A DNA stretch of 63,581 bases, counting the filler, from Guillardia theta CCMP2712 (taxonomy: Eukaryota; Protista; Cryptophyta), in assembly GCF_000315625.1 (NCBI RefSeq). It is 8 parts of 8 records of this genome, joined end to end, with 100 filler letters (N's around TTAATTAATTAA, not from the genome) between each part and the next. Parts side by side here need not be neighbours in the genome. Positions count along the whole stretch, not along the records: positions 28,401 to 45,569 come from NW_005434367.1; 7 more parts are not named here. One strand, written 5' to 3'. Below the pieces are notes generated by a model that had not been told where the DNA came from, did no database searches, and saw nothing but the letters and a program-made list of their open reading frames with translations. This document shows positions 14,400 to 45,569 of this stretch, in pieces. Position 1 is the first letter of the stretch. The number at the start of each line of letters is the position of its first letter. Position numbers and translations under genes: made by a program.

Positions 14400-17300
14400 T
14401 CAGCAGCTGTCCCAGGCGGACTCCTCGGCGGCTGCCCTTTCTCCGTCCGCGGCCTCTGCGGCGGCAGACGCGTCGACTGACAGCGGTCAGTCGGCTGCCT
14501 CCGGGTATCGTGTATGAGGGCGTTTACGTCCCCTTCTGTGCCCGGTATCACGGTGCTCGTCGCTTGCCCCACTCTGCCTTCCCGCGTGGGCTCAGGCTGG
14601 CAGCAGTGGTGGTTACTTTCGGTCTTATGTTTCGTTTGTTTGAGCCGCGTCCGTACCGTAGTACAACGCTTTTGACGTCTCGACTGACAGTGGTCAGTCT
14701 CCGTCCCTCACTGTGACGTGGGGTGCCTCCGCCTGCTTCCTCCCCGGCATCGGTCGGGTCACGCCGGTCCTTGGGCATTGCCGCGGCGTCGCCGCCGTCA
14801 CGGGCGGCTACCGCTGACTCGGCTACCGTGCGCTGACTCGGAGGCTAGCGAGCGGTACCGTGCTCCAGTGTCCAGCCTCCCTCCGTCCGCTGCCCCAGGC
14901 GGACCCCCGGGCAACGCCGGCTCCTTGTCGGCTTGTCATAGGATTGACGTCGGCGGCTGCCCTTTCTCCGTCCGCGGCCGCCCGCTTTGTGGCGGCAGCG
15001 GACGTCTCGACTGACAGTGGTCAGTCGGCTGCCTCCGGGTATCGCGTCTAAGGGATTTTCTTCCTCCTGCATGCTCCTGCTGCTTGTTGCTTGATTGCTT
15101 GACCCTTAGGCTGCTTGTCTGCGCGGCTTCGCGCTTGGGCTGGCGCTGCCGCGTCTGGGTGCCAGCAGTGCTGGTTCTTTTTGGGCTTGTGTGTGGTGTG
15201 TGATTNNNNNNNNNNNNNNNNNNNNNNNNNNNNNNNNNNNNNNNNNNNNNNNNNNNNNNNNNNNNNNNNNNNNNNNNNNNNNNNNNNNNNNNNNNNNNNN
15301 NNNNNGAAGGTCCACTATCTTGCACACAGTTCACAGCGAGAAGCTGCACAAACACACACAAATCACAAGCCCCAAAAGAACCAGCACAACCAGACGCGGC
15401 ATCGCCAGCCCACGCGGCAAGCCACGTAGACAGGATTCCAACGGTGGAAGCATCAAGAGTGTCGCTGGAGAAGCCTTTCCGTCCATCACTGTGACGTCTG
15501 ATTCCTCCGGAGAGCTCGACGCCACTGGAGCAGGTAATGGATTTACTGGCAGAAGGTAAAAAGTGCCTCAAGCAAAACAAAGCAGGATCAAGCTGAACCG
15601 GCAGGCACACAGTCCACAGCGAGAAGCTGCACAATCACACACAAAACACAAGCCCGAAAAGAACCAGCACTGCTGGCACCCAGACGCGGCAGCGCCAGCC
15701 CAAGCGCGAAGCCGCGCAGACAAGCAGCCTAAGGGTCAAGCAATCAAGCAACAAGCAGCAGGAGCATGCAGGAGGAATAAAATCCCTTAGACGCGATACC
15801 CGGAGGCAGCCGACTGACCACTGTCAGTCGAGACGTCCGCTGCCGCCACAAAGCGGGCGGCCGCGGACGGAGAAAGGGCAGCCGCCGACAAGGAGCCGGC
15901 GTTGCCCGGGGGTCCGCCTGGGGCAGCGGACGGAGGGAGGCTGGACACAGGAACACGGTACCGCTCGAGGTAGTCCTCCTCGCCGCGTAGTAGCCATAGG
16001 ATTTACTGTCGCTAGCCTCCGAGTCAGCGGTAGCCGAGTCAGTGGTAGCCGCCCGTGACGGCGGCGACGCCGCAGCAATGCCCAAGGACCGGCGTGACCC
16101 GACCGATGCCGGGGAGGAAGCAGGCGAGCTCGGACCAGCAGCAAGCACCCCAGTGGTGTCGAGCTCTCCGGAGGCACCCGACGTCACAGTGAGGGACGGA
16201 GACGCCTCGCCAGCTCCGCGCCGATCGTCGGGGCCACTCGAAGGGTGTCCCCCATCGGAGTCGGAGACCTCCGGCGAAGACTCCTCGGGCGACTCGACAA
16301 AGTCCGAGGAGGAGCTGTCCTCTGGCTCGAGAAGTGCTTGCGCCCGCAAGGGCGTCATGCGCCTCGCACCAGACAAGAGCGCTTCCAGCGTCAGCTGCAT
16401 GGTGAGGCGCTGATAGGTGGCGGCGCGTTTGCGAGCCAAGACCTCAGCAGCAGGTCCGTCATCAGGCACGAAGTGCCGACCAAACGCCGCATCCTCAAGA
16501 GGCATTGAGCGCTGAGCAATGATGTCCGCGAGATACCAGATGAAGCGGAGGGTGTCAGGATGCAGGGTACCGTCCGTCGAGATGGCAAGAGGGATGAACG
16601 CTCGAGGAGGAGTAGTCATGGCATATGCAGCGCGATGTTTGCGAATCTTCTCAGACGCTGCAACATGGAGGGCGTCGAGGTTGACCTCCCCCCACTTGGT
16701 CAGGTCGGCAGAGCTACCAATGTAAGGGTGGACCAACGTCACGTCCGCCATCAAGCCCTCGTACTGCTCGGACCCTCGATCGCGGATTCCAGGGATGTGG
16801 ATATCGCCCTTCATCTTGCGGCCATGAGGATGGGAGGGTACCTGCCGTCGAGAACGAGGATCCCCCACTGTATCGATGACGCTCTGAAGACCAGCTTCGT
16901 TCAGCATCGACCGAATCGTACGAGTAAGGTTGTCATGCGCCGTGGGAAGCTTGGAGGATCGGCGTTTGCAGGTCTGGAGATGATGTGCAGCAACGGAGGG
17001 GTCGAGCTCGCGCTGACATCCATCACATTCCGTCGGACACTGGCAGATCGGCATGCCATGGAGATAGCAGTCGAGCATCTGAGCATAGCGGTGCGGGAAG
17101 GCCTTGAGGGGGTAGTAGCTCGAGACTCGCATCGGAGAGTGGCTCAGGTCTGTTTGCATTTCTTGGATCGGTACCGTCAGCGTGCGCCCAGCCTCCAAGT
17201 GTCCGCTGACGGTCCCAGGCGGACCCTCAGGCAGCGCCGGCTCCTTGTCGGCGGCTGCCCTTTCTCCGTCCGCGGCCTCGCGCCGGCGCCGGACGCGTCG

Positions 17301-19367: not shown

Positions 19368-20125
19368 TATATATCTACATCTTCATATATCTATATATAC
19401 AAATTATAAAAATATATATAATTTTATTTTATATATATTTTTATATTTTTTTTTTTTTTTTTTTTTTTTTCCCCCCATCTCTCTATATCCTTCTACATTT
19501 ATTATGTGACAGGAGGAGAGGGAAGAGGATCAAAGAGGAGGGGAGGGGAGGAGAGGGAAGAGGAGAGGAGAAGAGAGAAGAGAAAACGAGGGTAGGGGAG
19601 GGAAGAGGAGAGAAGAGGAGAGGAGAGAAGACGAGGGTAGGGGAGGGAAGAGGAGAGAAGCGAAGAGAAGAGAAAACGAGGGTAGGGGAGGGAAGAGGAG
19701 GAGAGGGGTTTGGAGAGGGGAATTGAGAGGGGAATGGAAGCAATCTAGTTGGAGTTCAAATGACATGCAAGATAAAAGGCATGGATGAGAATCGATTCTG
19801 AATTATGAGAGAGAAGAATATGCAAGTCTACATTCCTTAGAATTCTAAGCTGCGTATTCCAAGAAATGTCGACAAAAAAACAAGGACTTACAAACACGAA
19901 GGCATACAAGTATCACAGCACATCAATATAGAGACTGAGGAATACATCGCCATACAAGTATGCAGACATACAGCTTCAAAATCCTCTAAAGATGCGTGCG
20001 GGCACACAGCTCACGGTAGAACATGCAAAAGGCAAAACCATCCTAGTCAGACAGTGCAGGACTCATATCTTGTTCAGAAGGTTCTCTTGTCCATTCTCCT
20101 AACCCTGTCATTTGTGTGTTTGCAG

Positions 20126-20526
20126 GAGGTCAATTCAATCAACATTCACATTAGGATGCCAGATGGTTCAGAGCAAACATTGCAGGTGTGCTCAGTCTGC
20201 ATGTGCTCTAGCGCGTCTTGAGCGTGTTAATGGTGTAGGTCGATCAGGGACAGACAGTCGAGTACGTGCGCGCGTATTTGCATGAGAATTGTGGGCTTCC
20301 TTTCTCCTCGTCGGTAAGAGGTCTTGTGCTCTTGGAGTAGCTTGACGAACTTCAGACGCTCTCGTTCCAAGCCCGAAAGCTCCTTGATCCTATGTCGCTC
20401 GTCGACTGCGGGGTGAGAATTTGCTTGCTCCCTGCTTCCTGTGAGTCCTTTTACATCGCACAGGTGTCAGACAACTCCAACTTGACTTGCACAGTGCAAT
20501 CAGCCGCAGATGGCGGAGATATGTGA
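20126..20526 (+). CDS. Small ubiquitin-like domain protein (at least 4 exons; 5' exons unresolved; missed by the ORF track)
   Basis: Exons 20126-20185, 20239-20313, 20356-20412, 20464-20526, all phase-0 GT-AG, give EVNSINIHIRMPDGSEQTLQVDQGQTVEYVRAYLHENCGLPFSSSTLSFQARKLLDPMSLVDCGVSDNSNLTCTVQSAADGGDM*. Confidence 0.75.
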
Positions 20527-20749
20527 GCGAGCAGACAAGTAGAGGCCATGGCTGTGGTCAGGAGCTAAGCAGGCAACGAGAGAATTGCAAGGAAGCGAGA
20601 GAAATGTGAATTCATCGCAAGGAAGGGAAAAGGGAGGCAAAGGCGGTGTGCCAGAAAACATCTAGGCAAAGTCGTTGTGCTAGAAATTATCTATAAACTA
20701 CACTATGAACAGTGATTCGAGTACTACACTAAAGCATAAATCCTTAACT

Positions 20750-28400: not shown

Positions 28401-28474
28401 AGACGACTGCAGCTTCAGCCCCGCCTCAGACCCCTGGAGGCCCGCCAGGAGGCTAAGTGTCCGGAGATTGGCCG
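28401..28474 (+). repeat. Partial 332-bp satellite unit at contig start
   Basis: Matches satellite segment gactgcagc..tcagccccgcctcagacccc..ggagattggccg. Confidence 0.9.
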
Positions 28475-30323
28475 CATTCCATTGGGTTCTCGACTGGATT
28501 TGTTTGTAGCAGGCGAGCCTGTTTGTACCGAGGTATAATTGAGTTTTACCGGGTTCAAGGATTTTTGTATCAGGATCCCCTTTCCCCCTCCGTACTAAGT
28601 TTGTACTGTCAATGTCAGCAATTCCCGTGGGCTGGCAGTGCTCCCTCGACTATCACCTCTACACCACCGGTATGTTTCACAAGAGATCATGTCAGGGTAG
28701 GTAGTCTGATTTCAGGAGTGGGCGAGAATCATAAAAGTCTTGGGCATTCTGGTAGTGGAATTGACGCTGAAAAGCAATCTCTTCGATTACCGTTAGGATT
28801 CGAACGCGTGGTCAAACAGCACCCACCTGAGCTAGAGTCTTGTACTCGAGTGGGGTGGCTGATGTGGGTTTGAATCGCCACGCCTTTGACCCCATTATTT
28901 CCATTCCAAACCTCGTTGTCGCGTAGGGTGGGTCACACTCTCGAGCGTTGCGAGTTTTACGGTTCGAATTTGACCAAGGTTCACCCTCTAACCCCCAGTC
29001 TCTCAATTTCAAATGGGAAAATGATGGGTAGGGGGTCCCCCCATTTGTCTCCACTCCAGCCCCCCCCTCCCTCGACGAACAAGAGATGGTGAGATTGTCC
29101 CATTGACGCGCGTGAGGACGATAATGAACAATGTGAGACTTCGAATCCTACCATGCATGGATATGCAGGAAAAGAAGATACGGTTACCTGTCTATTTGTG
29201 ATGACTTGGTCTCTTCTGTGAAATTCAAGAAGTAGAAAGGGATTTGAACTCAACATCTCATCCTCAACATAAAGCCAATGCAACATCTCTTTCATTACCA
29301 CGCTGCCTCAAATTGCACTAAAACCACTTAGATCACTTAGCTTGGGCTGAAGATGATGTCAAAGTTGAGCAAATAATTCAAATTCTTGCACAATGACGAT
29401 TGATTGAAAATGTTCAAGTGTAATTTCAGAATGGACAGAAGATGGCATAGCAACAGCCGATCTCAGCATGTATTTCGAAACTGTGATTGTAAGCAAAAAC
29501 ATCATACGAAATAGTGTCCACCTTGTGTTTCTCTCTGTCTCATGGCCTACGGTATCATTCGTGGCACAACCCTATATGGCCAGTGAGTTGCATCAGGGAC
29601 ACTGTAGATGTGCTGATTGGACAATGGCAGGTACATGATATGGTTGGCGATATTCAGAGTTTTAAGAAGATAATCGTTTGTATCAGATGCTTGTTTCAGA
29701 CGTGTCGATATGAGATTGCTTTCTACACTGAAAATCACGGCTGTGAATCGTATCATCGTGTTACTGCGGCATTGCCAATGATGTTGATGAAGCATCTTTC
29801 ATGACAACCCGTGCAAATGCCATCTTATTCTCTCTGCAAATCCTTTCTCGCAATTGCTCCAACCATGCAAATTCAGGAAAATGTCTTGTACACTCCGAGA
29901 TAGTATTGGCATGTTTGACATCTAGGCTGTGATACCAGGGATCAAGCGATATATAGAGTAGGCAGAAGCTGTATCAGTCATGCAAACTTGAATCTGCATA
30001 ACAACAGTTTCTGAAGATTGTTTATTNNNNNNNNNNNNNNNNNNNNNNNNNNNNNNNNNNNNNNNNNNNNNNNNNNNNNNNNNNNNNNNNNNNNNNNNNN
30101 NNNNNNNNNNNNNNNNNNNNNNNNNNNNNNNNNNNNNNNNNNNNNNNNNNNNNNNNNNNNNNNNNNNNNNNNNNNNNNNNNNNNNNNNNNNNNNNNNNNN
30201 NNNNNNNNNNNNNNNNNNNNNNNNNNNNNNNNNNNNNNNNNNNNNNNNNNNNNNNNNNNNNNNNNNNNNNNNNNNNNNNNNNNNNNNNNNNNNNNNNNNN
30301 NNNNNNNNNNNNNNNNNNNNNNN

Positions 30324-30830
30324 TGACGATGAGTATGTGTAAACAATCACATCTGCTAAGCGTTGCTATTGATTGCCAAGCAGAAACACACTTACAACAA
30401 CCTGGAATAGATCATCCTTGTGGTTCTTGCAGGATCATCTTCATGATAGCGGATTCCACAACCAGGAGTTAAAAGAACCCTTAAGCCCAGGGTGCTATTT
30501 GTCCATTGAGCTTCAATCGAACTCTGAGGTCGAGATAGGAGGGAACTTTGAATCTCCAAGATCAGGGGTTCATGCAAAATGGAAGGTGGTACATCTTGAA
30601 AGTCAATGTTTTCAATGGAGGACATTTTATCTCCATTTCTTCTGGTCTCGATGCCTCACAACGCAGCTGATCGTGAGCTTATGCGTATTGCAACCCCAGG
30701 AAAACATCATCGTTGGCGCGACATGCGTGCCCGACCCATTGCGTCTGATTACAAAATGTAAGGATCTGATTTGACATATCCGAAATATTTGGACATAATT
30801 TGAAATTTGAAGGGTATGTTTGTTTATTTG
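30324..30830 (-). pseudogene. Degenerate partial duplicate of the 5' end of the partner gene (copy of ~35150-35630)
   Basis: Near-identical MSSIENIDFQDVPPSILHEPLILEIQSSLL..RYHEDDPARTTR, then frameshift and stop. Confidence 0.8.
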
Positions 30831-31140
30831 CCTGAACTGTTCGTTTGTTTGTTTGTCTCTTCTGTATGTCTGTTTGTCTGTCTGTTCTGTGTATGTGTGT
30901 TTGTCTGTTGCTGTTCGTTTGTTTGTTTGTCTCTTCTGTATGTCTGTTTGTCTGTCTGTTCTGTGTATGTGTGTTTGTCTGTTGCTGTTCGTTTGTTTGT
31001 TTGTCTCTTCTGTATGTGTGTTTGTCTGCGTGAGCAAAACACAGTTTTTTTGTTTTGCTCACTACCCCTGCTTGTCTCTTCTGTATGTGTGTTTGTCTGC
31101 GTGAGCAAAACACAGTTTTTTGTTTTGCTCACTACCCCTG
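30815..31140. repeat. GT-rich tandem repeats (~74-bp and ~71-bp units); the latter carry 12-bp-stem hairpins
   Basis: GTGAGCAAAACA..TGTTTTGCTCAC at 31030-31062 and 31101-31132. Confidence 0.8.
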
Positions 31141-31508
31141 CAGAGTCAGTGAAACCCTACGACCATGCAGCAACACCCCCAAAAACACAAGTTGAACGTG
31201 GGGTGCGCTTATTATCATATGAAAAGGGGGTAGGTAGTGGGAACACAGCCCCTTTTCTGATCAAACCTCAAACACAAAACGTAGTACCTACCCATTCACT
31301 CCGGCCTACCCTACCAAATATCATGATAAATCGGTATAAAGTGTAGGTAGGGGTAGTTTTCCACCGTGTTCAGGGGTGGGGGTTATATCCCTACTATATT
31401 ACAACCTGTGCAATTGTTCTCTACCATGTGTGGAAATATTCCATGTCAAGGGCTCAACATTTGTTCTAAAATTTCATACTTGAACTGTAAAGTCGAGACC
31501 AAGCTGAA

Positions 31509-34307
31509 ATGTTCAATCAAATTGCGGAATCATTAGCAACAAATAGTAGTTTTCCCGGACAAAATCCACCCACTGATTGCCATTTTTCTCGCAACGTGTT
31601 CTCTCTACCGCAGTGCAAATGTCGTGTGGAAGATTTCAATCCTTTTCATCCATGTTGTTACCGCCGCCCTTTGGATGGCTACGACATGCAGCGAATTGTT
31701 CAAGCTTATCCTGTTCGAAGTATGGACAGCTACACGATGGCATTCCTACAAGGCTTGAATCCAACACCTTATCGTCGTGTCAACTACGATGAAGCTACCT
31801 GGAGGGGACTTGAACATTTTGCATTGCTGGAAGGCTTCATGGAGAAAACTTCTGATAAGCCTGATGTTGCTTCTTTCTTGTACTACGTTGCAAACGGATA
31901 TCTTTTTTCGCCATCGTCTGTTGTTGGAAGTACTCTGCAAGGCTACTTCAATTGCGCGAGTCGGTTGGCACACTTGAGTGCAGAATATGAAAAACTCAAA
32001 AGTGAGCATCAGCGCATGAAAGATGCAATTCCCAACATTGACAAGGTTCTAAATTTGACATTTGAGGACATTTGGAAAGCAAATTTCCCTCAGGAGATAT
32101 GCCCGGCAAATCTGGAAGACATTTCCAATGATTCTGCAGACAAAAAGCTAAGAATTCTCAAGGACATTCTTGCTGAAATAACTCCCACCTCCAATTTGCT
32201 CTCTGGAGGTCTGCAACGCATGACAGGCTTGAATGGAAGTGGCAAAGCTTTCGGCCATCTCAGTGATCTACGTCAAAGTTCCGATTCACTGTTTCACCTG
32301 GAGTCGTTTATGAATGGTTTTGCACAATCTGCATCTTTTCATTTGAAAAAGCATGCCAAGACCAACAAGAGGATAAAGAAAGCGTTGCAAAAAATGTACA
32401 ACTCTGTTTGTGCGAGAATAGACGAGCTTTCTCTTATGACTTTGCAAAATGGACTGACTCACAAGGCGTTGGACGATCTTCACAAAATGATGAAGGAAAG
32501 TGGGCTTCAAGTTATGCACAGTCCTACGGAAATCAGCAGGACGAAGGCCAAGCAAAAAAGATTAGTAGAAGAAAAGGTTGATGGAATAGTCGAGCTTCCT
32601 GGGGGCCATGGAGCAAATCTTATCAAAGTGACGGAATTGTTTTTCATGAAGCTTGTGCAGTCGACACCAGAATTGATGTCGGTCAAAGGATTGAAGTTGT
32701 CCACCTGCTTCGATAGCGTCCGACTAGGCTGTTCAGCTCAGTCAGGAACAGAGCATACAGACTTTGCAATGAATTTGATTGGAGTCTGGGATGATGCCGT
32801 GCAGTTTGCAGACTGTTTTTTCGATCAAGAAACAAGATTAAATTCTCCTGCATCGTATGTCACATTTTTACTGATCTATTTGCAAGATTCAATTGAAAAT
32901 ATCAAGGCAAATCTTTGGGATGAATATGGACTTGACTTGAAGGCATTCTTAGGCGAACTGATCTGTGCGGATGGAAGGAAGATAGCTGCTGGGCTGCATT
33001 TTTACAGGGACGACAATGGAAATTTGACGTGCATCGATGGTCGGAAACGGTCCATGAGTGACCCTGCTGCTCATCCTGAGCTCATCATTCCCCTCTCAAT
33101 TGAATTTCGTGGCGACCTCAAGGGCTTGTGGCATCTTGTCGGCATGAAAGGTAATTGCTGATAGCATGGTTGCCTCAGTGTCCTTTCTAAACGTCATTTT
33201 CGCATAGGTGCCAAGGGAGATCAATGCTGCTTGTACTGCCATGTAAAATCAGCTGAGCGTCATCTCATCTTCGATATCGCGGAGGTTCCTGAGGACATCA
33301 CTGTCGATGATTTCTGCAAGGAAAGAGCAATTCCAGCAGATGTGTTCTGGTTGGTTCACGAAGTGCTAACCAATGGAGGGCAATGCAGTATCGTACATCA
33401 ATGCATGTTCGGTGGAAAATGTTTGAGCAAGGCAGACGTGTCTAAGCTGAATGTGTCAAAAAGGAGCAAGACACTGAAACGTGGGCAGAAGGTGGTCGTA
33501 CTGAAGCAGGATCACGGAATGGAAAGAGAACATGAGGTTTTGAAAGAACATGGACTTGATTGCAAAAGCCTTGTCATTTGTGTTCTCCATCTCAAATTGC
33601 GGATTGTATACTGTGTCCTCAAGTGTGTATACAAAACAGCTCAACGAAAGCACCGAACTAAACAAGCTCAAAGCATTTTACACAAGTCTGGAATCAAGTA
33701 TAAGTTGGAAGAAAACAATGGGAAGCTTCCTAACTTGACAGGCAAACAGTGCGACGATTTGTTGAACCGAGCTATGGGACCCCTACTCGACCTCCTTTAT
33801 GATGATGTTGATGAGCGAAATAGATACACTGAGATCTACAAAGAGTTGTCATCCGTACTTTCGACATTGTCTTGTACGCATGTTTCCCATCTTACCGATG
33901 AAGACATTGGTACATTAGCGACGAGGATCAATTCATTCGTTATCAGATACGTCGTAGAATGCGGCGATAAGGAACTCTTCAGTGCTGTGTATTTTCACTT
34001 TTTATCTGCCGGACATGTCGCAGAATTATTCCACTATCATCTTTCAGAACGAAACGTTACTTTGGGTGCTCTGAGCATGTCAAGTTTGGAACTAAGGCAC
34101 AGAATTTGCGGACGACCTGCTTGGAGAAAAGGATTGATGGAAGGCAATGCAGCAGCAGGTAGAAAACGATCTCATGAAAACATGACCGAGGATCATGTAG
34201 ATACAGCGACTCTGCAGCAAATGTCTAGGAATATGAGCAATTTTTTTGCATTCAGAAATTTGCTAACGTCAGGATTAGGAACGATTGTAAATTTGTACTA
34301 CTCTTAG
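31509..34307 (+). CDS. RAG1/Transib/Chapaev-like DDE transposase, 2 exons (31509-33150, 33208-34307), ~913 aa
   Basis: 57-nt GT-AG intron joins the ORFs in frame (EFRGDLKGLWHLVGMKGAKGDQCCLYC); motifs STCFD, GDLK..G..CxxC, CVLHLKLRI, LTGKQCDDLL, YFHFLSAGHV, LGALSMSSLELRHR parallel RAG1 ESCDG, YDEK..CTLC, DALHCDIG, MNGNFARKL, YFHKTLAHV, IGAWASEGNESGNK. Confidence 0.8.
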
Positions 34308-34322
34308 TTCAGTGCCCATGAT

Positions 34323-35576
34323 TTATAACACTCTCTGTTGCCTCTTTTTCTTGTCTCGCCAATCAACCCATTGGATCTTGCCCATCATGCCACCAATGCT
34401 ACCGACTGTTTCAAAACCCACGGACATATTCCCCCGTTTGTACGACAAATACATCGGTCCGCCCACAAACATTTGTGTCAGATTTTCTTGAAGCTTCGGT
34501 GTCGACTTGAAAGGGATATCTAACACTTCTCTGAAAGCTTTATCTTGAACGATGTTCTCTGCAAATATCCATGTGAATTGTGATTTGTTCCTCTTCGCCT
34601 TGACATGTTTGAAAAGACGAGGTGGAATTAAACGAAGCAAACTCCTCATTGAAATATTCTTGCAAGTAAAGTCAAGATCTTGTGTGCCTGCTTTCTTGAA
34701 TGTACGACTCCTGGCTGTGAGCCATAGCTGCATGCTGTTCTTAATCTCTTCGATGTCTGAGACTGTCTTGAGGTAACCGGATGGTGTGAGCACTGAAGCT
34801 TCGATGCTGGAAGATACTATCTTCTTAATTGTTTGTTCAGGGTCTTGCAATTTGAAGTACGAAATCTCACAATAGGGCTTTCGACGATTGTAGTTGTCTT
34901 CATTGAAGAAAATGTACCCTACAACATCGATAATCCTTGATTGCGGTGCTTGAGACGACATAGAATCAAGAAGGAATGGATACTGAATAGTTAGCACATC
35001 CTGAATCAGGTCCAGGTCCACTTCTTCCGTGTACACTGATTGGAAGCATGTTCTCGCATTCATCGACCTCACAATCTGCCTCATGGACTTGTTTTGTAAG
35101 CCATGCTTTGAAATATTTGCATCAACTTTGTCCAAAAGATTCTTGTCATACAACATGAAAATCTCCACCCTGCAATCGGAAACCAAACGTTTGATTATAC
35201 CGTACCTTGTGGTTCTTGCAGGATCATCTTCATGATAGCGGATTCCACAACCAGGAGTTAAAAGAACCCGTAAGCCCAGGGTGCTATTTGTCCATTGAGC
35301 TTCAATCGAACTCTGAGGTTGAGATAGGAGGGAACTTTGAATCTCCAAGATCAGGGGTTCATGCAAAATGGAAGGTGGTACATCTTGAAAGTCAATGTTT
35401 TCAATGGAGGACATTTTATCTCCATTTCTTCTGGTCTCGATGCCTCTCAACGCAGCTGATCGTTGGCGCGACATGTGCCCGTCAACAGCGCCAAGGCCCG
35501 TCGCCGTGAATAATTTATGCGTGTTTTGCCAAACCCATTGCGTCTGATTACAAAATGTAAGGATCTGATTTGACAT
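34323..35576 (-). CDS. Transposon partner protein convergent with the transposase, possible divergent BAH domain (start uncertain)
   Basis: Intact ORF of ~360-420 aa; stop codon 15 bp from the transposase stop; homolog at 42846-43898. Confidence 0.7.
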   Translation of the reverse strand: MSNQILTFCNQTQWVWQNTHKLFTATGLGAVDGHMSRQRSAALRGIETRRNGDKMSSIENIDFQDVPPSILHEPLILEIQSSLLSQPQSSIEAQWTNSTLGLRVLLTPGCGIRYHEDDPARTTRYGIIKRLVSDCRVEIFMLYDKNLLDKVDANISKHGLQNKSMRQIVRSMNARTCFQSVYTEEVDLDLIQDVLTIQYPFLLDSMSSQAPQSRIIDVVGYIFFNEDNYNRRKPYCEISYFKLQDPEQTIKKIVSSSIEASVLTPSGYLKTVSDIEEIKNSMQLWLTARSRTFKKAGTQDLDFTCKNISMRSLLRLIPPRLFKHVKAKRNKSQFTWIFAENIVQDKAFREVLDIPFKSTPKLQENLTQMFVGGPMYLSYKRGNMSVGFETVGSIGGMMGKIQWVDWRDKKKRQQRVL

Positions 35577-35619
35577 ATCCAAAATATTTGGGAGCACTTT
35601 GAAATTTGCCAGGGGGTGT

Positions 35620-37518
35620 ATGTCTGCTTATCCCAACAAAACAATGCATTGGCAGAAAACAGACGAGGAACGATCTGCGCAGTTGGAGGTCAATCGAAGA
35701 AGAAAACGGGAGAGGAGGGCCCGCGAAACAGAGGAAGAACGATCTGCGCGGTTAGCAAGCCAACGAAGGAGACAATCGGAGAGGAGGGCCCGCGAAACAG
35801 AGGAAGAACGATCTGCGCGGTTAGCAAGCCAACGAAGGAGACAATCGGAGAGGAGGGCCCGCGAAACAGAGGAAGAACGATGTGCGCGGTTAGCAAGCCA
35901 ACGAAGGAGACAATCGGAGAGGAGGCAGAGGGCCCGCGAAACAGAGGAAGAACGATCGGCAAGTATGGAAACTCTGCGAAACCGCAAGCGCAGAAGTCGG
36001 AGTGCTGTTTACAATGTGTATCAAGAGGCTGCACACAAGAAAATTTCAATACGAGAAGAGCTGATGATCTACCCAGTGGACATGCGGTTTCTCAATGAAG
36101 TAGAAAAGCAGTTTGATTTAACAAGAATGGTTGGCTCGGGGACTTTCGGGGAGGTCTATGAGGCCTACGACAGGTTAAATGATCGTCGAGTAGCAATCAA
36201 ACGATTATTACCATTTCAAACCATGGATGCGCATAAGAAGGAAGCAAACTTTATATCAAGCTTGCATGGAAAATCCAACATTGTACAGCGTGTGCAAAGT
36301 CCGCCACTGGCGCCTAATGGGATAATCCTTGTCGAGGAGCAGCAGGCTTTGATTTTTGAATACTTCGAACATGACAGTCCCTCAGATTACGTCAAAGATT
36401 TGACCATCAAAGAGATTACCCACTACATGAAGAATTTGTTTGTAGCATTGAGGTCTGTACATGCCCTCGGGATCATACATCGAGACGTGAAATTGAATAA
36501 CTTCCTCTACGACAGAAGGAACAAGAAGTACTTGCTTGTGGACTTTGGGCTGGCAGAGAAGAAAATGCAGAAGACTGCTCTGGGAATTTCCACAGGACAA
36601 ACGCCTTCACCAGGCCGCAGAACAACGTCAGGGTCAATGAGCAAGTATTTCCCTGCCACGAAGAGCAACGGCTACATCTTGCCCTCTGAGAACCTGGCGC
36701 AGCAGATTGCAAAGAGGCGAAGGTTGGGCGTCAGAAGGACGAACGCATCGGAGACCGTGAGGAACTCAGGGGTCAAACTGAAACGGCTTCCAGTCAACCG
36801 CGGGGGAACCCGGGGCTACCGCGCGCCCGAAGTGCTCATGGGCAGCCACCACCAGACGAAAGCAGTGGACGTCTGGAGCGCTGGGGTGATACTGCTTACC
36901 CTGCTGTGCCGGCAGACACACTGCTTCCAGTGGTTCCGGCATGACAATGACAACTTGGCGGTCATGGAGATCTACGGGTACGCCCGTTGTGTAAGCCTTG
37001 AAGTAAGTGCGCTGGTCTGACTGTATGGTCTGAACAGCTTGCGCATGTACATCAAGAGCATGGACGCTGAGTTCCAGCACAACTATGGGTATACGGGTCA
37101 GTACAGGGATAAGATCAGAGATGTCATCGAAGATTTCAAGCTCGACGTTGAAGTAAAATTGTTGTCGTTGTTGCTGCTGTTGTTGTATCATGAGGATGAG
37201 GATGAGGATGAGGATGAGGATGAAGATGAGGATGAGGGTGATATGGTGGCGGGACTCTTAAGCTGGGGATGCTAACTTCATGTCATTCAGTTCGGACCAT
37301 TGGAACAGTATCTCAGCTATGCCCGCGGTTTGGAGCAAACATGGCGGACCTTATCAAGCGCCCTGAGCGAGGATGCGGGATGCAAGGGCTGGCTGGAGGT
37401 GGAGGAGAAACATGCGATCTGGGACTTCCTCAACCGCTGCCTCGACATCGATCCCCGCACGAGGATGACTGCAGAGGAGGCTCTGAAGCATCCCTTCCTC
37501 GCTAGTGGTCTTGAGTAA
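35620..37518 (+). CDS. CDC7-like Ser/Thr kinase with N-terminal 23-aa STPR-like repeats (introns 36978-37037, 37153-37290)
   Basis: GSGTFGEVY, VAIKRL, HRDVKLNNFLYDRRNKKYLLVDFGLAE, long insert, NRGGTRGYRAPEVL..HQTKAVDVWSAGVILL, RMTAEEALKHPF, all characteristic of CDC7. Confidence 0.8.
35656..35960 (+). repeat. 69-bp coding tandem repeat (ETEEERSARLASQRRRQSERRAR), about 4.5 copies
   Basis: Directly visible; unit is 23 aa. Confidence 0.9.
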
Positions 37519-38590
37519 ACCGTCTCTCCTCTGGCATCTCCCAGTCTCTCGCGATCAGCATATCATCGCAGTGACCTCCCAGGCTTCTCTTTCCCTTCCA
37601 ACCCCTACTCTCCCATCTCCTTCCCACCTCCCCTGTCCCCTCCTCTCTCCTCCCTCAGCCTCACAAACTCCAATGACATGTTATAATCGCCATCCCACTG
37701 GCTGTTGAGAGCATTTCACAAGACTCAAACTGTTGTGGAATGCATTGGGAGAAGCCTCAAAAAATGCAATCATGGCAAAGCACCAGCAAGTCTCTTGAAA
37801 TATGTTTCATATACAACCGACGAAGCATTCTGGTACAGGAAGCTAGGCCGTCATCGCAATAAGGAGAATAGCATTTCCTTCATGTCTTCGAAGGTTGCCT
37901 CTCTGATCGATTCCTTTCATGTTTCCCTTCTGAAAGTGTGAAAACAGCTGATCAGGGCTTTGGCACATCAGAATTGAGGTGTTTCAGTGCAAGTATGACA
38001 AGGAAAGTCACACAATTATTGGATAGCGTGAGCATGCAAATTTGAATGCATACCTTACACTATTACAAGTCAATGCACAGTTACAACTATGCTCACAATG
38101 CTTCAAAGCATATTTGCATTTACACGCAACTCAACGAACTGAGATTCAAATATTTCCTTTCCACAAAATTCTTATTGCAACATGATATGCATCATCCTCA
38201 AAACACTCTGCTTAAAGGAAATGCAGTCGTTTTCCCACATGATACATTCAAATCTGGTCAAATTTGGCATCAAAAGATGTTCTTGTCATCACATTGATGT
38301 ATGTATCTCACAACATGGTGCCCACAGGGCGCGATCTGCTTGAACGTGAGTCTCCGAAACTGACATAGTGTTCAACATTGGTACATTCGGTACAACGTTT
38401 AAAAATTCCAGAAATGGCACGGTGCTGGCAGGATCCCACAATTTGAAATGGCGTGGTTTGACAGAAGTAAAACATTTCAAGGAAAATTTTCACTTTGAAA
38501 TCCAAAACCTATTCATTAAGAAAAATCCAGGTAGAAAAAGACCCCGCCGAGACGGAATAAAATCCAGTTGAGAACCCAATGGAATGGGGC

Positions 38591-38817
38591 CTGACCGGTC
38601 ACGGCCGCCCGGAGAGATCAGGCCCCCGGCCAATCTCCGGACACTTAGCCTCCTGGCGGGCCTCCAGGGGGTCTGAGGCGGGGCTGAAGGCTGCAGTCGG
38701 TCTACTGACGGGCCCGGCCGGCAGGATCCGTCGAGAAACAGGGGGGTCAACTTCAAGGGAGGTTTTCTTCCCCCTGGGAGAAATGTCCTATGGGTTTTTG
38801 GATCTGCGATATAAAAC
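38591..38817 (-). repeat. Inverted partial satellite unit
   Basis: Reverse complement of the 332-bp unit, abutting the right TIR of element 1. Confidence 0.9.
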
Positions 38818-41586
38818 TGTTTCTCGACGATCCTGCCGGCCGGGCCCGTCAGTAGACCGACTGCAGCCTTCAGCCCTGCCTCAGACCCCAGGAGATTGGC
38901 CGGGGGCCTGATCTCTCCGGGCGGCCGTGACCGGTCAGCGGACCGTGTCAGCAGGCCCGTGACATGTCAGCCGGCTGACAGGGGCCGTGACCCGGCTGAC
39001 AGGCTCACCTGACCGGTCACGTGACACATCACGTGACCGAGACAAGACTTTTTTATATCGCAGATCCAAAAACCCATAGGACATTTCTCCCAGGGGGAAG
39101 AAAACCTCCCTTGACCCCCCTGTTTCTCGACGGATCCTGCCGGCCGGGCCCGTCAGTAGACCGACTGCAGCCTTCAGCCCCGCCTCAGACCCCCTGGAGG
39201 CCCGCCAGGAGGCTAAGTGTCCGGAGATTGGCCGGGGGCCTGATCTCTCCGGGCGGCCGTGACCGGTCAGCGGACCGTGTCAGCAGGCCCGTGACATGTC
39301 AGCCGGCTGACAGGGGCCGTGACCCGGCTGACAGGCTCACCTGACCGGTCACGTGACACATCACGTGACCGAGACAAGACTTTTTTATATCGCAGATCCA
39401 AAAACCCATAGGACATTTCTCCCAGGGGGAAGAAAACCTCCCTTGACCCCCCTGTTTCTCGACGGATCCTGCCGGCCGGGCCCGTCAGTAGACCGACTGC
39501 AGCCTTCAGCCCCGCCTCAGACCCCCTGGAGGCCCGCCAGGAGGCTAAGTGTCCGGAGATTGGCCGGGGGCCTGATCTCTCCGGGCGGCCGTGACCGGTC
39601 AGCGGACCGTGTCAGCAGGCCCGTGACATGTCAGCCGGCTGACAGGGGCCGTGACCCGGCTGACAGGCTCACCTGACCGGTCACGTGACACATCACGTGA
39701 CCGAGACAAGACTTTTTTATATCGCAGATCCAAAAACCCATAGGACATTTCTCCCAGGGGGAAGAAAACCTCCCTTGACCCCCCTGTTTCTCGACGGATC
39801 CTGCCGGCCGGGCCCGTCAGTAGACCGACTGCAGCCTTCAGCCCCGCCTCAGACCCCCTGGAGGCCCGCCAGGAGGCTAAGTGTCCGGAGATTGGCCGGG
39901 GGCCTGATCTCTCCGGGCGGCCGTGACCGGTCAGCGGACCGTGTCAGCAGGCCCGTGACATGTCAGCCGGCTGACAGGGGCCGTGACCCGGCTGACAGGC
40001 TCACCTGACCGGTCACGTGACACATCACGTGACCGAGACAAGACTTTTTTATATCGCAGATCCAAAAACCCATAGGACATTTCTCCCAGGGGGAAGAAAA
40101 CCTCCCTTGACCCCCCTGTTTCTCGACGGATCCTGCCGGCCGGGCCGGTCAGTAGACCGACTGCAGCCTTCAGCCCCGCCTCAGACCCCCTGGAGGCCCG
40201 CCAGGAGGCTAAGTGTCCGGAGATTGGCCGGGGGCCTGATCTCTCCGGGCGGCCGTGACCGGTCAGCGGACCGTGTCAGCAGGCCCGTGACATGTCAGCC
40301 GGCTGACAGGGGCCGTGACCCGGCTGACAGGCTCACCTGACCGGTCACGTGACACATCACGTGACCGAGACAAGACTTTTTTATATCGCAGATCCAAAAA
40401 CCCATAGGACATTTCTCCCAGGGGGAAGAAAACCTCCCTTGACCCCCCTGTTTCTCGACGGATCCTGCCGGCCGGGCCCGTCAGTAGACCGACTGCAGCC
40501 TTCAGCCCCGCCTCAGACCCCCTGGAGGCCCGCCAGGAGGCTAAGTGTCCGGAGATTGCCCGGGGGCCTGATCTCTCCGGGCGGCCGTGACCGGTCAGCG
40601 GACCGTGTCAGCAGGCCCGTGACATGTCAGCCGGCTGACAGGGGCCGTGACCCGGCTGACAGGCTCACCTGACCGGTCACGTGACACATCACGTGACCGA
40701 GACAAGACTTTTTTATATCGCAGATCCAAAAACCATAGGACATTTCTCCCAGGGGGAAGAAAACCTCCCTTGACCCCCCTGTTTCTCGACGGATCCTGCC
40801 GGCCGGGCCCGTCAGTAGACCGACTGCAGCCTTCAGCCCCGCCTCAGACCCCCTGGAGGCCCGCCAGGAGGCTAAGTGTCCGGAGATTGGCCGGGGGCCT
40901 GATCTCTCCGGGCGGCCGTGACCGGTCAGCGGACCGTGTCAGCAGGCCCGTGACATGTCAGCCGGCTGACAGGGGCCGTGACCCGGCTGACAGGCTCAGC
41001 TGACCGGTCACGTGACACATCACGTGACCGAGACAAGACTTTTTTATATCGCAGATCCAAAAACCCATAGGACATTTCTCCCAGGGGGAAGAAAACCTCC
41101 CTTGACCCCCCTGTTTCTCGACGGATCCTGCCGGCCGGGCCCGTCAGTAGACCGACTGCAGCCTTCAGCCCCGCCTCAGACCCCCTGGAGGCCCGCCAGG
41201 AGGCTAAGTGTCCGGAGATTGGCCGGGGGCCCGATCTCTCCGGGCGGCCGTGACCGGTCAGCGGACCGTGTCAGCAGGCCCGTGACATGTCAGCCGGCTG
41301 ACAGGGGCCGTGACCCGGCTGACAGGCTCACCTGACCGGTCACGTGACACATCACGTGACCGAGACAAGACTTTTTTATATCGCAGATCCAAAAACCCAT
41401 AGGACATTTCTCCCAGGGGGAAGAAAACCTCCCTTGACCCCCCTGTTTCTCGACGGATCCTGCCGGCCGGGCCCGTCAGTAGACCGACTGCAGCCTTCAG
41501 CCCCGCCTCAGACCCCCTGGAGGCCCGCCAGGAGGCTAAGTGTCCGGAGATTGGCCGGGGGCCCGATCTCTCCGGGCGGCCGTGAC
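38818..41586 (+). repeat. 332-bp tandem satellite, about 8 near-identical units
   Basis: Same sequence recurs at 39021, 39353, 39685, 40017, 40349, 40681, 41012, 41344. Confidence 0.97.
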
Positions 41587-41925
41587 CATGCCGTTCACAA
41601 GGTCATATGCAGGCTCTAGCAAAATTGGTCTTTTTTTTTCTCCTTGGGAAGGGGTTCATATATACACTTCCATTCAGCTACCCCGGTTTTTTCTCTCGAA
41701 ATTCAAACCAAATTCAAAACCGTGATTAAAAGTGATTTTTGGAAGTTTAGCTTATCGTTTCTTGGGTACCTTCTAAAATGTTTTAANNNNNNNNNNNNNN
41801 NNNNNNNNNNNNNNNNNNNNNNNNNNNNNNNNNNNNNNNNNNNNNNNNNNNNNNNNNNNNNNNNNNNNNNNNNNNNNNNNNNNNNNTTGAAACGTAAGGG
41901 TTCAATCAGGGGCCTCAGACCCCCT

Positions 41926-44543
41926 CATTCCATGGCATTTTCTAATGCTCGCTTTTGATCATTTTCGAGCGGGGTACTTCAGCCCAGGATTTTTGAATGG
42001 TCGGCGCACTGAAAATTTGTACCAGAAACTTCGATAATGGTTGAAAGTATGTTTGAATCGGGGACCGTGTCGAGCAGTTTTAGGTTTACAAGTATTCTTG
42101 CTTCCTCCAAACAACAAGGTTTCAAACATTAAAACTATTTTTGACCTTACACGCTTTTACACGCCTGGGGGGTGCATATACAACCAAATTGCCTGCCCTC
42201 CCCCTTCCCCCATTGCTGCATCCGCACCCGCCGGCGCAGGCGGCGTTTGTTTGAATCCCAGATGGCTCTCAGCCAATGGCTCTTTCATCGTATTCAAGCT
42301 CCAGGCCATCCAAGGTTGGATCATGTGTGAATGTTTGTACTTTTTGCGGCATACTGCAAGACGACGTTTCAAACAGCTCGAGCTTGTTTTTCAAAGGAAG
42401 CTGTAGGAATCAGCATCGCCATGGATTCCAGAGCCTAGGGCTGTTTTCGAATCCATTTGATGCTCATTGCAAGATGGAGAATTGCTCGTTTTTGGTGATC
42501 AAGCATCCACAACCCTCTTTCGTATGATTGAGCTTCGAGCACATCTCTGACTGTAGAGTTGTTTGGTGTCAAGATTGTTTCTCGTAAAGGATCTCTCTGA
42601 TTAGGCAATTGATTGTTGTTTTGATTGGCATTCTACAAGACCCATACTTCCTCCTCTCTGTGTCAACCAAGCACATAAGCATAAGGCATGTCAGTCGTGT
42701 AGGCAACTTGATTGCAAATAGATCGCAAGTGTAAGATCGATGAACTATTCAACGCCATGAATGCCGGATGTGAATGAACTTCCCTCAGGACTTCTCAGTA
42801 TCGGAACCAGCGAGCTAAGACATAAGGTAGAGTCTCCATTGAATATCATTCCTGCGAATGTAATGTTTTTATCAGTTGTGGGGAAGAGAAGCATGGAGAC
42901 AAGCGGGTGCCCAAGCGAATAAGAACATCTTGCGGATGTAGGTTTGGACAAAGACGGCGCCGATTCCGAGGTTGTGAAACAGGCAGCGAAAAGATGCTGA
43001 GGTTTTCGGAGTTCATAAACATGGCTTGTGACGAGCATGTCACACGTAAAGCGATGGAAAACAACAAACAAAAATTGTAAAGCAATCGAAAGCAACGAAA
43101 ATCAATGGAAAACAACAAACAAAAATTCTTCTCAAAGGTCTCACTCCTTGACATCAACCACTGATCGAACATCTTTTTGACCTCGGTCATATCTCGACAA
43201 ATCCGATTGTACTCCGCCGCTGAACAGAAAGTTGTTTGCGCCATCTTTTCAACGAGTGGTGCCGGGTTTGCAATCGAGAAGTGAGAGATTTTACAGTATT
43301 TATTATTTTCGATGTCGTCTTCATGAAAAAATATATACCCATGCACTCTGAAATTATCGTGGAGATCATCGTTGGCATGCTCCAACATGCAAGGAAAGCT
43401 GAAGAAACACATTTTTGGTATAGCATTTATTTCATCCGTATCCTTGTAAATTGCTTGATAACAATCACGGTTTCCAACTTTGTTCAAAATTCTTTTCAGG
43501 GCCACACAGGGCACTCGATTAGTTATAATGGTTTCGTCTACATGTTCCAAGAGGACTCCATTGTACATGATGTACACTTCGACAACCTGTGCATCTGAGT
43601 GCAGCGATTTGATCATGCCCAGTCGATTCACTTCAACGCCCCTGTGATCTTCACACTGATATTGAACCCCTGTGCCAGGCTCAAGCATAATATTCAAATT
43701 ACTGCCTGGCTTTTTCCAGTACATCCTGGGCAAGTCTCGATCATCAACTGACGTATGCAGGATCATTCGAAGCTTCAAATCTTCAGGTGTCTTTGACTCA
43801 TCACAAGTCTCTTCCTGCTCCAAGAATGTATCGAAATCTTCCTGCCTTCGCCTTCTCTGAATTCCATTTGTTGCTGATACACGACGGTGAAGATTCATTT
43901 GTTTGGTGTCTATAACTGGAGCGCAAGGGAAAGGGAAGCAACGGGGAGGGAGGGGAGCAGGGGGGAGGGAGGGAGCAGGGAGGAAGGGAGGGGAGCAGAG
44001 AGGGAGGGAGGGAGGGAGAAGAGCAGGAAGGAGGAGGGGAGGGATACTTGCAATGGGGATCTCAGGATTTTAATGAAAATTATTTGCTCTTTGATCGGGG
44101 GCAAGGGGACCTGTGTTTCGGTGGCACCCTATAGACATGGGGTAGGTATCTATATAAAACAACCGGTGTAGAAAAAAAAGATTGCCGTTGCTAGCTGGCA
44201 TACGACTCCTTAATTTGAAAACAAAAATACTTATTGGCTAGATTTACTACACTCGTCAATGGCTGACACTAATAAGATTTCATGAGCGTGTATCGAAATA
44301 TACGAATAACCCTACCCCCTCCATATCAGACAAACATACCGGTACACAGGGAAGAGAGCAGCCAAGAGGCGTGTAAGCCGGAACTCAAATGCTTAAAACA
44401 AATATAAAACAGTACTGAGTGGTACAAATCATTCTGGTACAAAATTGACTAAAAACTGTATGCTTATGATCAAATTAACAGGTACAAGTGTTTGTTAAAA
44501 GGATATTAATTTATAATTGGGCATTAGTAAATGCCATGGAATG
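41926..44543. mobile_element. 2.6-kb non-autonomous TIR element (element 2) carrying a partner-gene paralog
   Basis: CATTCCATGGCATTTTCTAATGCTC (41926-41950) vs reverse complement of 44519-44543, 23/25 identical; same CATTCCAT terminus as element 1; satellite sequence on both flanks. Confidence 0.8.
42745..43898 (-). CDS. Paralog of the element-1 partner protein; C-terminus probably frameshifted by a short internal duplication
   Basis: LEPGTGVQY..RLGMIKSL..VEVYIMY..CYQAIY..VHGYIFFHED..YCKISHF..QWLMSRSETFEK aligns with LTPGCGIRY..RYGIIKRL..VEIFMLY..CFQSVY..VVGYIFFNED..YCEISYF..LWLTARSRTFKK; NFCLLFSI is duplicated. Confidence 0.75.
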
Positions 44544-45569
44544 GGGGCCTGATCTCTCCGGGCGGCCGTGACCGGTCAGCGGACCGTGTCAGCAGGCCCG
44601 TGACATGTCAGCCGGCTGACAGGGGCCGTGACCCGGCTGACAGGCTCACCTGACCGGTCACGTGACACATCACGTGACCGAGACAAGACTTTTTTATATC
44701 GCAGATCCAAAAACCCATAGGACATTTCTCCCAGGGGGAAGAAAACCTCCCTTGACCCCCCTGTTTCTCGACGGATCCTGCCGGCCGGGCCCGTCAGTAG
44801 ACCGACTGCAGCCTTCAGCCCCGCCTCAGACCCCCTGGAGGCCCGCCAGGAGGCTAAGTGTCCGGAGATTGGCCGGGGGCCTGATCTCTCCGGGCGGCCG
44901 TGACCGGTCAGCGGACCGTGTCAGCAGGCCCGTGACATGTCAGCCGGCTGACAGGGGCCGTGACCCGGCTGACAGGCTCACCTGACCGGTCACGTGACAC
45001 ATCACGTGACCGAGACAAGACTTTTTTATATCGCAGATCCAAAAACCCATAGGACATTTCTCCCAGGGGGAAGAAAACCTCCCTTGACCCCCCTGTTTCT
45101 CGACGGATCCTGCCGGCCGGGCCCGTCAGTAGACCGACTGCAGCCTTCAGCCCCGCCTCAGACCCCCTGGAGGCCCGCCAGGAGGCTAAGTGTCCGGAGA
45201 TGGGCCCGATCTCTCCGGGCGGCCGTGACCGGTCAGCGGACCGTGTCAGCAGGCCCGTGACATGTCAGCCGGCTGACAGGGGCCGTGACCCGGCTGACAG
45301 GCTCACCTGACCGGTCACGTGACACATCACGTGACCGAGACAAGACTTTTTTATATCGCAGATCCAAAAACCCATAGGACAATTTCTCCAGGGGGAAAGA
45401 AACCTCCCTTCACCCCCCTGGTTTCTCGACGATCCTGCCGGCCGGGCCCGTCAGTAGACCGACTGCAGCCTTCAGCCCCGCCTCAGACCCCCTGGAGGCC
45501 CGCCAGGAGGCTAAGTGTCCGAGATTGGCCGGGGCCTGATCTCTCTGGCGCCGTGACCGGTCAGCGGAC
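44544..45569 (+). repeat. 332-bp satellite, about 3 units running into contig end
   Basis: Units at 44662, 44994, 45319. Confidence 0.95.

Follow-up and report, generated by a model that had tools for sequence, protein, structure and literature searches.

A transposase gene with a RAG1-type fold and a BAH-type partner gene in a probable two-gene DNA transposon of the cryptophyte Guillardia theta

RAG1 assembles antibody genes and is descended from a transposase; it needs a PHD-bearing partner, RAG2, and the origin of its pairing with this chromatin reader is an open question. Transib transposons have no partner gene. Here we describe a transposase gene, its convergent neighbour and the element that carries both, identified in a window of 63,581 nt of Guillardia theta CCMP2712 DNA (the whole stretch analysed, in which all positions are counted unless another locus is named), where positions 28401-45569 are the start of nuclear scaffold JH993271.1. 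Motifs of the C(2)C and H(3-4)H types are common to EnSpm/CACTA, Mirage, Chapaev, Transib, Plavaka, ESTA, Lanisha and RAG1 (Kojima, 2025, PMC12730594), and the CACTA-Mirage-Chapaev-Transib (CMCT) clade, named in the same work, has 5'-CA..TG-3' termini and target duplications of 2-5 bp, the termini of PlavakaB beginning with CATCA and its duplications being of 2-3 bp (PMC12730594). In the unicellular alga Aureococcus anophagefferens, the AanRAGL element carries recognisable RAG1L and RAG2L sequences, and has CACACCC termini as well as duplications of 5 bp (Tao et al., 2022, PMC9435367).

Comparison of the G. theta locus with these systems leads us to consider it quite probable that the gene encoding P0001 (GenBank model GUITHDRAFT_149260, 816 aa, labelled "hypothetical protein"; residue numbers follow P0001) codes for the transposase of a DNA transposon of the nuclear genome that has two genes, moves by cut-and-paste and belongs to a lineage of the CMCT clade. 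The AlphaFold model, built on a 20-sequence family alignment, has predicted local distance difference test (pLDDT) values of 80-95 across residues 280-786 and supports the assignment of the product as a RAG1-fold DDE enzyme. RAG1, BbRAG1L and HzTransib account for all of the best 49 Foldseek matches in the PDB (best E 2.6e-9), and the P element transposase comes next with E 0.06. VIA-align gives Z 17.1 for RAG1 (420 residues aligned, root-mean-square deviation 4.6, model 242-816 on RAG1 480-1016 or 461-996), Z 16.3 for BbRAG1L and Z 16.2 for HzTransib, with lower scores for the P element (Z 11) and Hermes (Z 6). The match begins at the dimerisation and DNA-binding domain (DDBD) of RAG1 and extends to its C-terminal domain (CTD), with the RAG1-type set of DDBD, pre-RNase H, RNase H, ZnC2, ZnH2 and CTD domains, at about 10-15% identity in the structural alignments to RAG1-type proteins. 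The N-terminal 240 residues are helical and unrelated to RAG1, BbRAG1L or HzTransib.

Among the 20 sequences of the family, residues D343, D477, C496, C499, the CxxH motif at 613-616, H752, H758 and E783 show little or no variation. The candidate DDE triad D343/D477/E783 is placed by the secondary-structure elements of the model, with D343 on the first RNase H strand, D477, in an R-x-D-x-x-G motif, just past the fourth strand, and E783 in a late helix. The two cysteines of the CxxC motif are invariant and lie at +19 and +22 from D477, and the two histidines (codons 33996-33998 and 34014-34016) are invariant with a spacing of 5. The candidate triad, the CxxC after the second D and the His pair before the E, together with the fold from DDBD to CTD, are likenesses to RAG1, BbRAG1L and HzTransib, while CxxH stands in the family where RAG1 has DxxH. 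A preliminary description, made from the sequence alone, had picked these three acidic residues as candidate catalytic residues, CLYC and HxxxxxH as candidate zinc ligands, and CVLH in place of the D-x-LH of RAG1; all are found where it had put them (Table 1) and are conserved in the family (the last one as CxxH), and the acidic residues fall on the expected RNase H elements of the model. It had also called the enzyme RAG1-like, which holds for the fold, the model aligning with RAG1, BbRAG1L and HzTransib over about 400-420 residues, but does not show membership in Transib/RAGL, since fold and motifs are clade-wide.

The relationship is invisible at the sequence level. Pfam assigns no family to either exon, to P0001 or to nine relatives, with no RAG1 family at E<=1 for ten members, and phmmer and hmmsearch against PDB sequences, with single exons, the family profile and two short motif profiles as queries, retrieve no RAG1 or Transib chain. 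A phmmer search of 1.84 billion representative proteins yields 19 matches, all within the family, namely G. theta paralogs, Hanusia phi proteins from EukProt (transcriptome-derived) and environmental contigs. In a word-index search the protein and the alignment return G. theta paralogs only and the partner query returns itself alone; a locus search with the P0025 protein of the sister subfamily (see below) added just two short contigs. The host range of the family is so far limited to cryptophytes. A literature search pairing Transib with Guillardia found no paper, and the supplementary text searched from a broad RAGL/Transib survey (PMC9435367) does not mention Guillardia. What is new is a sequence-invisible, cryptophyte-restricted lineage with a BAH (bromo-adjacent homology) partner. 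A name can now be given to five models of G. theta that are listed as hypothetical proteins, and to partner genes missing from the annotation.

The family could instead be a true member of Transib/RAGL, sister to or nested in RAG1-Transib, and a counterpart of the Aureococcus RAGL with a BAH protein replacing RAG2, a placement that we find possible but rather doubtful. All 49 of the best matches among solved structures point in this direction, as does the alignment of 401 out of 480 HzTransib residues; however, the PDB holds no structures of CACTA, Mirage or Chapaev, and as only RAG1 and Transib represent the CMCT clade there, RAG1 as the best match is expected for any member of the clade. A shape search of the ESM Atlas gives matches to a predicted CACTA cluster (template-modelling score 0.47, 482 residues aligned) and to a DUF1280 cluster that are roughly as good as those to the RAG1 clusters. 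Since predicted CACTA models share the RAG1-type fold, this fold is necessary but insufficient for membership in RAG1/Transib. Among the language-model neighbours the RAG1 clusters score 0.96, ahead of Transposase_21 (0.88-0.89) and Plavaka (0.86), with DUF1280 at 0.95 when RAG1 families are excluded. The spacing from the second D to CxxC equals the +19/+22 that separates D708 from C727 and C730 in RAG1, but the His pair has spacing 5 and not 4. There is also no match to RAG1/Transib at the sequence level or to a Pfam RAG1 family, and the termini, although they are inverted repeats starting with CA as in RAG1/Transib, begin with CAT and not with CAC or a CACAGTG-like sequence; the 5-bp duplication is likewise not seen. 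The two genes converge, an arrangement known from RAG1-RAG2 and ProtoRAG (PMC10462144), but the product of the second is a BAH protein, as opposed to the kelch plus PHD architecture of RAG2. AanRAGL (PMC9435367) likewise comes from a unicellular alga, links a second gene to that of a RAG1-type transposase and has terminal inverted repeats starting with CA, whereas the cryptophyte family has no recognisable RAG1L or RAG2L sequence, no 5-bp duplication and no CACACCC termini.

Features of the CMCT clade observed in the family are the C(2)C motif, the His pair (spacing 5) and CA..TG termini at eight of the eight ends seen. The terminal sequences are CATTCC in the element studied here and in its paralog at locus L001, and CATAYYGGTC in the sister subfamily, with no 5'-CAC resembling the heptamer of a recombination signal sequence; termini starting with CAT are also a likeness to PlavakaB. 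Target duplications are short or absent, which is compatible with the 2-5 bp of the clade, and a second gene is present in several CMCT lineages as well. The EnSpm/CACTA assignment was tested separately: there is no Pfam match to Transposase_21 (PF02992) and there are no CACTA termini, while subterminal repeat motifs are present, as in CACTA elements. The family differs from described CMCT groups in having no Pfam match to Plavaka or DUF1280 either, and in its cryptophyte host range. We therefore assign it to the CMCT clade, where it would form a new lineage, found in cryptophytes and having a RAG1-type fold, that is nearest either to Transib/RAG1 or to another branch.

The inverted termini of the element (30 nt each, beginning with CATTCC) match at 27 of 30 positions. 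The paralogous element of L001 (8655-13757 in that locus) has 5,103 bp and termini that match at 25 of 26 positions and also begin with CATTCC. At either end, the subterminal region of one element is homologous to that of the other, and the TTGTACC-like motifs under the left end have identical offsets in both (30, 49, 70, 91 and 127), over an internal background of approximately 1.3 per 400 nt. The array is likely to represent protein-binding sites.

These data bear on a further explanation, by which an RNase H-like scaffold is all that the protein shares with RAG1; it would be some other nuclease or would bind DNA without catalysis, and the inverted repeats would be part of the flanking satellite. 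Sequence-level homology to any known transposase is indeed absent, and the inverted repeat continues outward into the satellite (28413-28474 versus 38627-38689). However, the structural match goes beyond the RNase H core, taking in five domains of RAG1 and about 420 residues, and scores well above those with the P element and Hermes. In addition, the CATTCC termini also bound the L001 paralog, at a locus without the satellite, and copies of the sister subfamily end sharply within flanks that are unrelated. Hence this explanation is largely refuted, and we consider it highly improbable.

The satellite is GC-rich, with a unit of 332 bp, and occupies 28404-28474, 38591-41587 and 44544-45569, flanking the element. 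A 226-nt inverted piece of it (38591-38816) lies just past the right terminus and is joined via 4-nt microhomology. The possibility that the satellite is a part of the element or accompanies it at other loci was considered and found no support, as none of the nine other loci has similarity to it. A second, 5'-truncated relative lies between two satellite arrays; it retains a partner-like ORF (open reading frame) at 42846-43898 on the minus strand, 26-27% identical and present as a solo copy, and its left junction shows no terminus. The termini at 28475, 38586 and 44543 all adjoin one position of the satellite unit (...TTGGCCG/GGGGCCTGA...), with no evident duplication, and this shared junction suggests either site-specific insertion or local duplication.

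Evidence for mobility comes from the sister subfamily (P0023/P0025), where a unit of 4.62 kb with 95-99.9% identity is found in four to five unrelated flanks, counting genome and metagenome contigs, and ends sharply with inverted CATAYYGGTC at both sides. On these grounds the sister subfamily is clearly mobile. Between diverged sister copies, the ratio of nonsynonymous to synonymous substitution rates is 0.25-0.35 in the transposase gene and 0.22-0.31 in that of the partner, which indicates purifying selection on both genes. A 5-bp target duplication was seen in none of five insertions (the window, L001, L004, L006 and L007), although metagenome flanks may be mis-joined, and is rejected at these five. 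When the flanks of L006 and L007 are paired anew, in the way suggested by contig L008, two 3-bp matches (GCG and CGG) appear; L001 has a 2-bp flank match (GT), and there is none at L004 or at the element in the window.

The two ORFs of the transposase (31509-33161 and 33231-34307) are one expressed, spliced G. theta gene. The preliminary description had joined them by a 57-nt intron, and this is borne out by several lines of evidence. The ORFs have a common reading frame, the intron lies within a Gly codon (...ATGAAAG/GTAATT...CGCATAG/GTGCC) and contains in-frame TGA and TAG stops, and the GUITHDRAFT_149260 protein crosses the identical junction (...LVGMK-G-AKGDQCCLYC...). The intron is thus not hidden, as it had been called, since the GenBank model already has the exact junction. 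Moreover, Logan contigs from three runs of three studies, covering approximately 31426-35276, each skip exactly these 57 nt, and contigs lacking a genomic GT..AG intron are most simply derived from transcripts. The paralog GUITHDRAFT_145307 has a 50-nt GTAATT...CAG intron in the homologous Gly codon and in the identical phase, and hence the intron is real and old.

The single-intron structure of the approximately 913-aa product proposed earlier holds, as the second intron of GUITHDRAFT_149260 in GenBank (about 34158-34275, 38 codons) is skipped in none of the three contigs, which makes the single-intron product the better model; the retained 38-codon segment near the C-terminus aligns with paralogs, and the annotated C-terminus is probably wrong. 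The start, and with it the length, is less firm. A 5-nt insertion (ACTTG) after 31519 in the contig of one run puts ATG 31509 out of frame, so that either the assembly or the strain of that run differs here. Translation may accordingly start at Met 31686, giving a product of 854 and not 913 aa, and the first 59 codons, which are Cys/His-rich, may be left untranslated.

The intact, transcribed ORF also allows for domestication: the copy in the window, and perhaps the whole P0001/P0002 branch, could be a host gene pair, no longer a transposon, that serves a cellular function such as programmed DNA rearrangement or maintenance of satellite or heterochromatin, which we consider quite unlikely. The copy is single at the identity threshold applied, its spliced transcript is found in three studies, and the conservation of the intron position between paralogs that are 57% identical implies long persistence; no target duplication is seen, and a Cdc7-like kinase gene adjoins. 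Nevertheless, the copy retains both termini, 27/30 identical, with subterminal repeats typical of the family, the L001 paralog has well-matched termini too, and the sister copies are clearly mobile.

A homolog of the partner gene lies directly downstream of the transposase gene, in convergent orientation, in seven of the seven full-length loci (four in G. theta and three on environmental contigs). The N-terminal half of its product is predicted to be a BAH domain. Model residues 50-205 have pLDDT 60-85 and the C-terminal half is below 50; the top 50 Foldseek matches are all BAH domains (Orc1, Sir3, SHL, EBS, TNRC18, BAHCC1 and DNMT1 among them), the top 18 matches of VIA-align, which is independent of Foldseek, are also all BAH (Z up to 11.9, 121-127 residues aligned), and BAH clusters of the ESM Atlas match as well. 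At the sequence level there is no match to the Pfam BAH profile (PF01426) at E<=0.1. A RAG2-like kelch propeller was considered for the partner and rejected, as both Foldseek and VIA-align give BAH and no kelch match. In G. theta the partner genes are under-annotated, with no model matching the ORF in L003 (12699-13841) or L004 (12599-13933). The literature searched contains no description of a BAH partner gene for EnSpm/CACTA, Mirage, Chapaev, Transib, Plavaka, ESTA or Lanisha, and a search combining bromo-adjacent homology with transposon terms found no paper with that phrase.

The partner is conserved and inherited together with the transposase, and purifying selection acts on it. Most likely it serves as a cofactor, either by reading chromatin or by binding to the element ends. 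Cut-and-paste transposition by the DDE site at the CA termini follows from the anatomy of the element. The transposase, which may still be active, would bind the termini and subterminal repeats, and its DDE site would nick at the CA end; to judge by the fold and the CxxH motif, hairpins would probably form on the flanking DNA, as with RAG and HzTransib, and the element would be reinserted with a short stagger. The BAH protein might tether or license the reaction on particular chromatin, or else bind the subterminal repeats. A stronger version of this scheme, in which the family is an independent cryptophyte "RAG-like" two-component machine whose transposase needs the BAH reader, is active and targets one position of the 332-bp satellite, seems unlikely to us; if true, it would mean that RAG1-type transposases recruited chromatin-reading partners more than once.

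The locus thus combines a RAG1-shaped transposase, missed by sequence searches, with a different partner of the chromatin-reader type that always accompanies it tail-to-tail. If the partner is a cofactor, the pairing of a RAG1-type nuclease with a chromatin reader is recurrent and not a single accident, and the family offers a second tractable system for asking why such pairing arises. Moreover, a deep-branching lineage is added for rooting the CMCT clade.

Several points weigh against the interpretation as a two-gene CMCT transposon with a RAG1-type enzyme. Neither Pfam, HMMER searches of the PDB nor phmmer link the protein to any transposase family, and membership in Transib/RAGL is not shown, as three defining features were tested and none of them was found. 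The copy in the window is single in the genome at at least 90% identity, is twice as long as its paralog and is not flanked by a target-site duplication; it is also interrupted by an assembly gap and contains a kinase gene and a partial internal duplication. The family as a whole gives no single length for the target-site duplication. The partner model has an overall pLDDT of 49 and is poor beyond the BAH domain. As for expression, the RNA status of the three Logan contig sets is an automated guess, and the sole certain RNA-seq run gave three reads only, with 6% of the run read.

Table 1. Coordinates of the element, its genes and related features in the window
Feature	Positions	Strand	Details
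Element bounded by terminal inverted repeats	28475-38586	+	10,112 bp; assembly gap (Ns) 30027-30323
Left terminal inverted repeat	28475-28504	+	CATTCCATTGGG...
Left subterminal array	28504-28610	+	Five TTGTACC-like motifs (likely binding sites), about 20 nt apart
Partial duplicate of the 5' part of the partner gene and its upstream region	30386-30823	-	Sequence match, tblastn of partner ORF
Transposase gene, exon 1	31509-33150	+	Start ATG 31509 or Met 31686; candidate D343 32712-32714, candidate D477 33114-33116
Transposase gene, intron	33151-33207	+	57 nt, GT..AG, phase 1
Transposase gene, exon 2	33208-34307	+	CxxC 33228-33239; CxxH (CVLH) 33579-33590; HxxxxxH 33996-34016; candidate E783 34089-34091; stop 34305-34307
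Partner gene	34323-35597	-	ORF 424 aa; GenBank model (34323-35156) covers the last 277 aa only
Predicted BAH-fold domain	34848-35321	-	AlphaFold, Foldseek, VIA-align, ESM Atlas
Cdc7-like protein kinase gene	36082-37518	+	Inside the pair of terminal inverted repeats; Pfam Pkinase 7.6e-35
Right terminal inverted repeat	38557-38586	-	Pairs with the left end
Second, 5'-truncated relative	41588-44543	-	Between two satellite arrays; right terminus ...CCATGGAATG at 44543

What the element has in addition to its L001 paralog is the assembly gap, the partial duplicate of the partner gene and the Cdc7-like kinase gene. The duplicate is 87% identical to its source overall (30416-30823 versus 35205-35623) and 99% identical in a 259-nt core. 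Upstream of the transposase gene lie T/G-rich tandem repeats of 74 and 71 nt (30837-31141), which contain two copies of a hairpin-forming palindrome, GTGAGCAAAAC...GTTTTGCTCAC.

The best PDB matches of the kinase are human CDC7 (7e-33) and yeast Cdc7 (1.3e-30), and it has a C-terminal exon-like ORF at 37300-37518. In the kinase region (35599-37518), the upstream part of the ORF consists of 69-nt tandem repeats (35657-35957) with an Arg/Glu-rich product. The gene may be transposon cargo, a host gene trapped via rearrangement or the cell's own CDC7. As a component of the family the kinase was rejected, since the termini of the L001 paralog do not enclose the kinase genes found close to it, and these are only 21% identical to the one in the window.

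In the neighbourhood of the paralog GUITHDRAFT_162260 (L003), a gene at 14820-15975 has a faint match to Ulp1-type peptidase C48, and a fragment of piggyBac type (DDE_Tnp_1_7) is found at 20111-20601, which suggests that this neighbourhood is rich in transposons.

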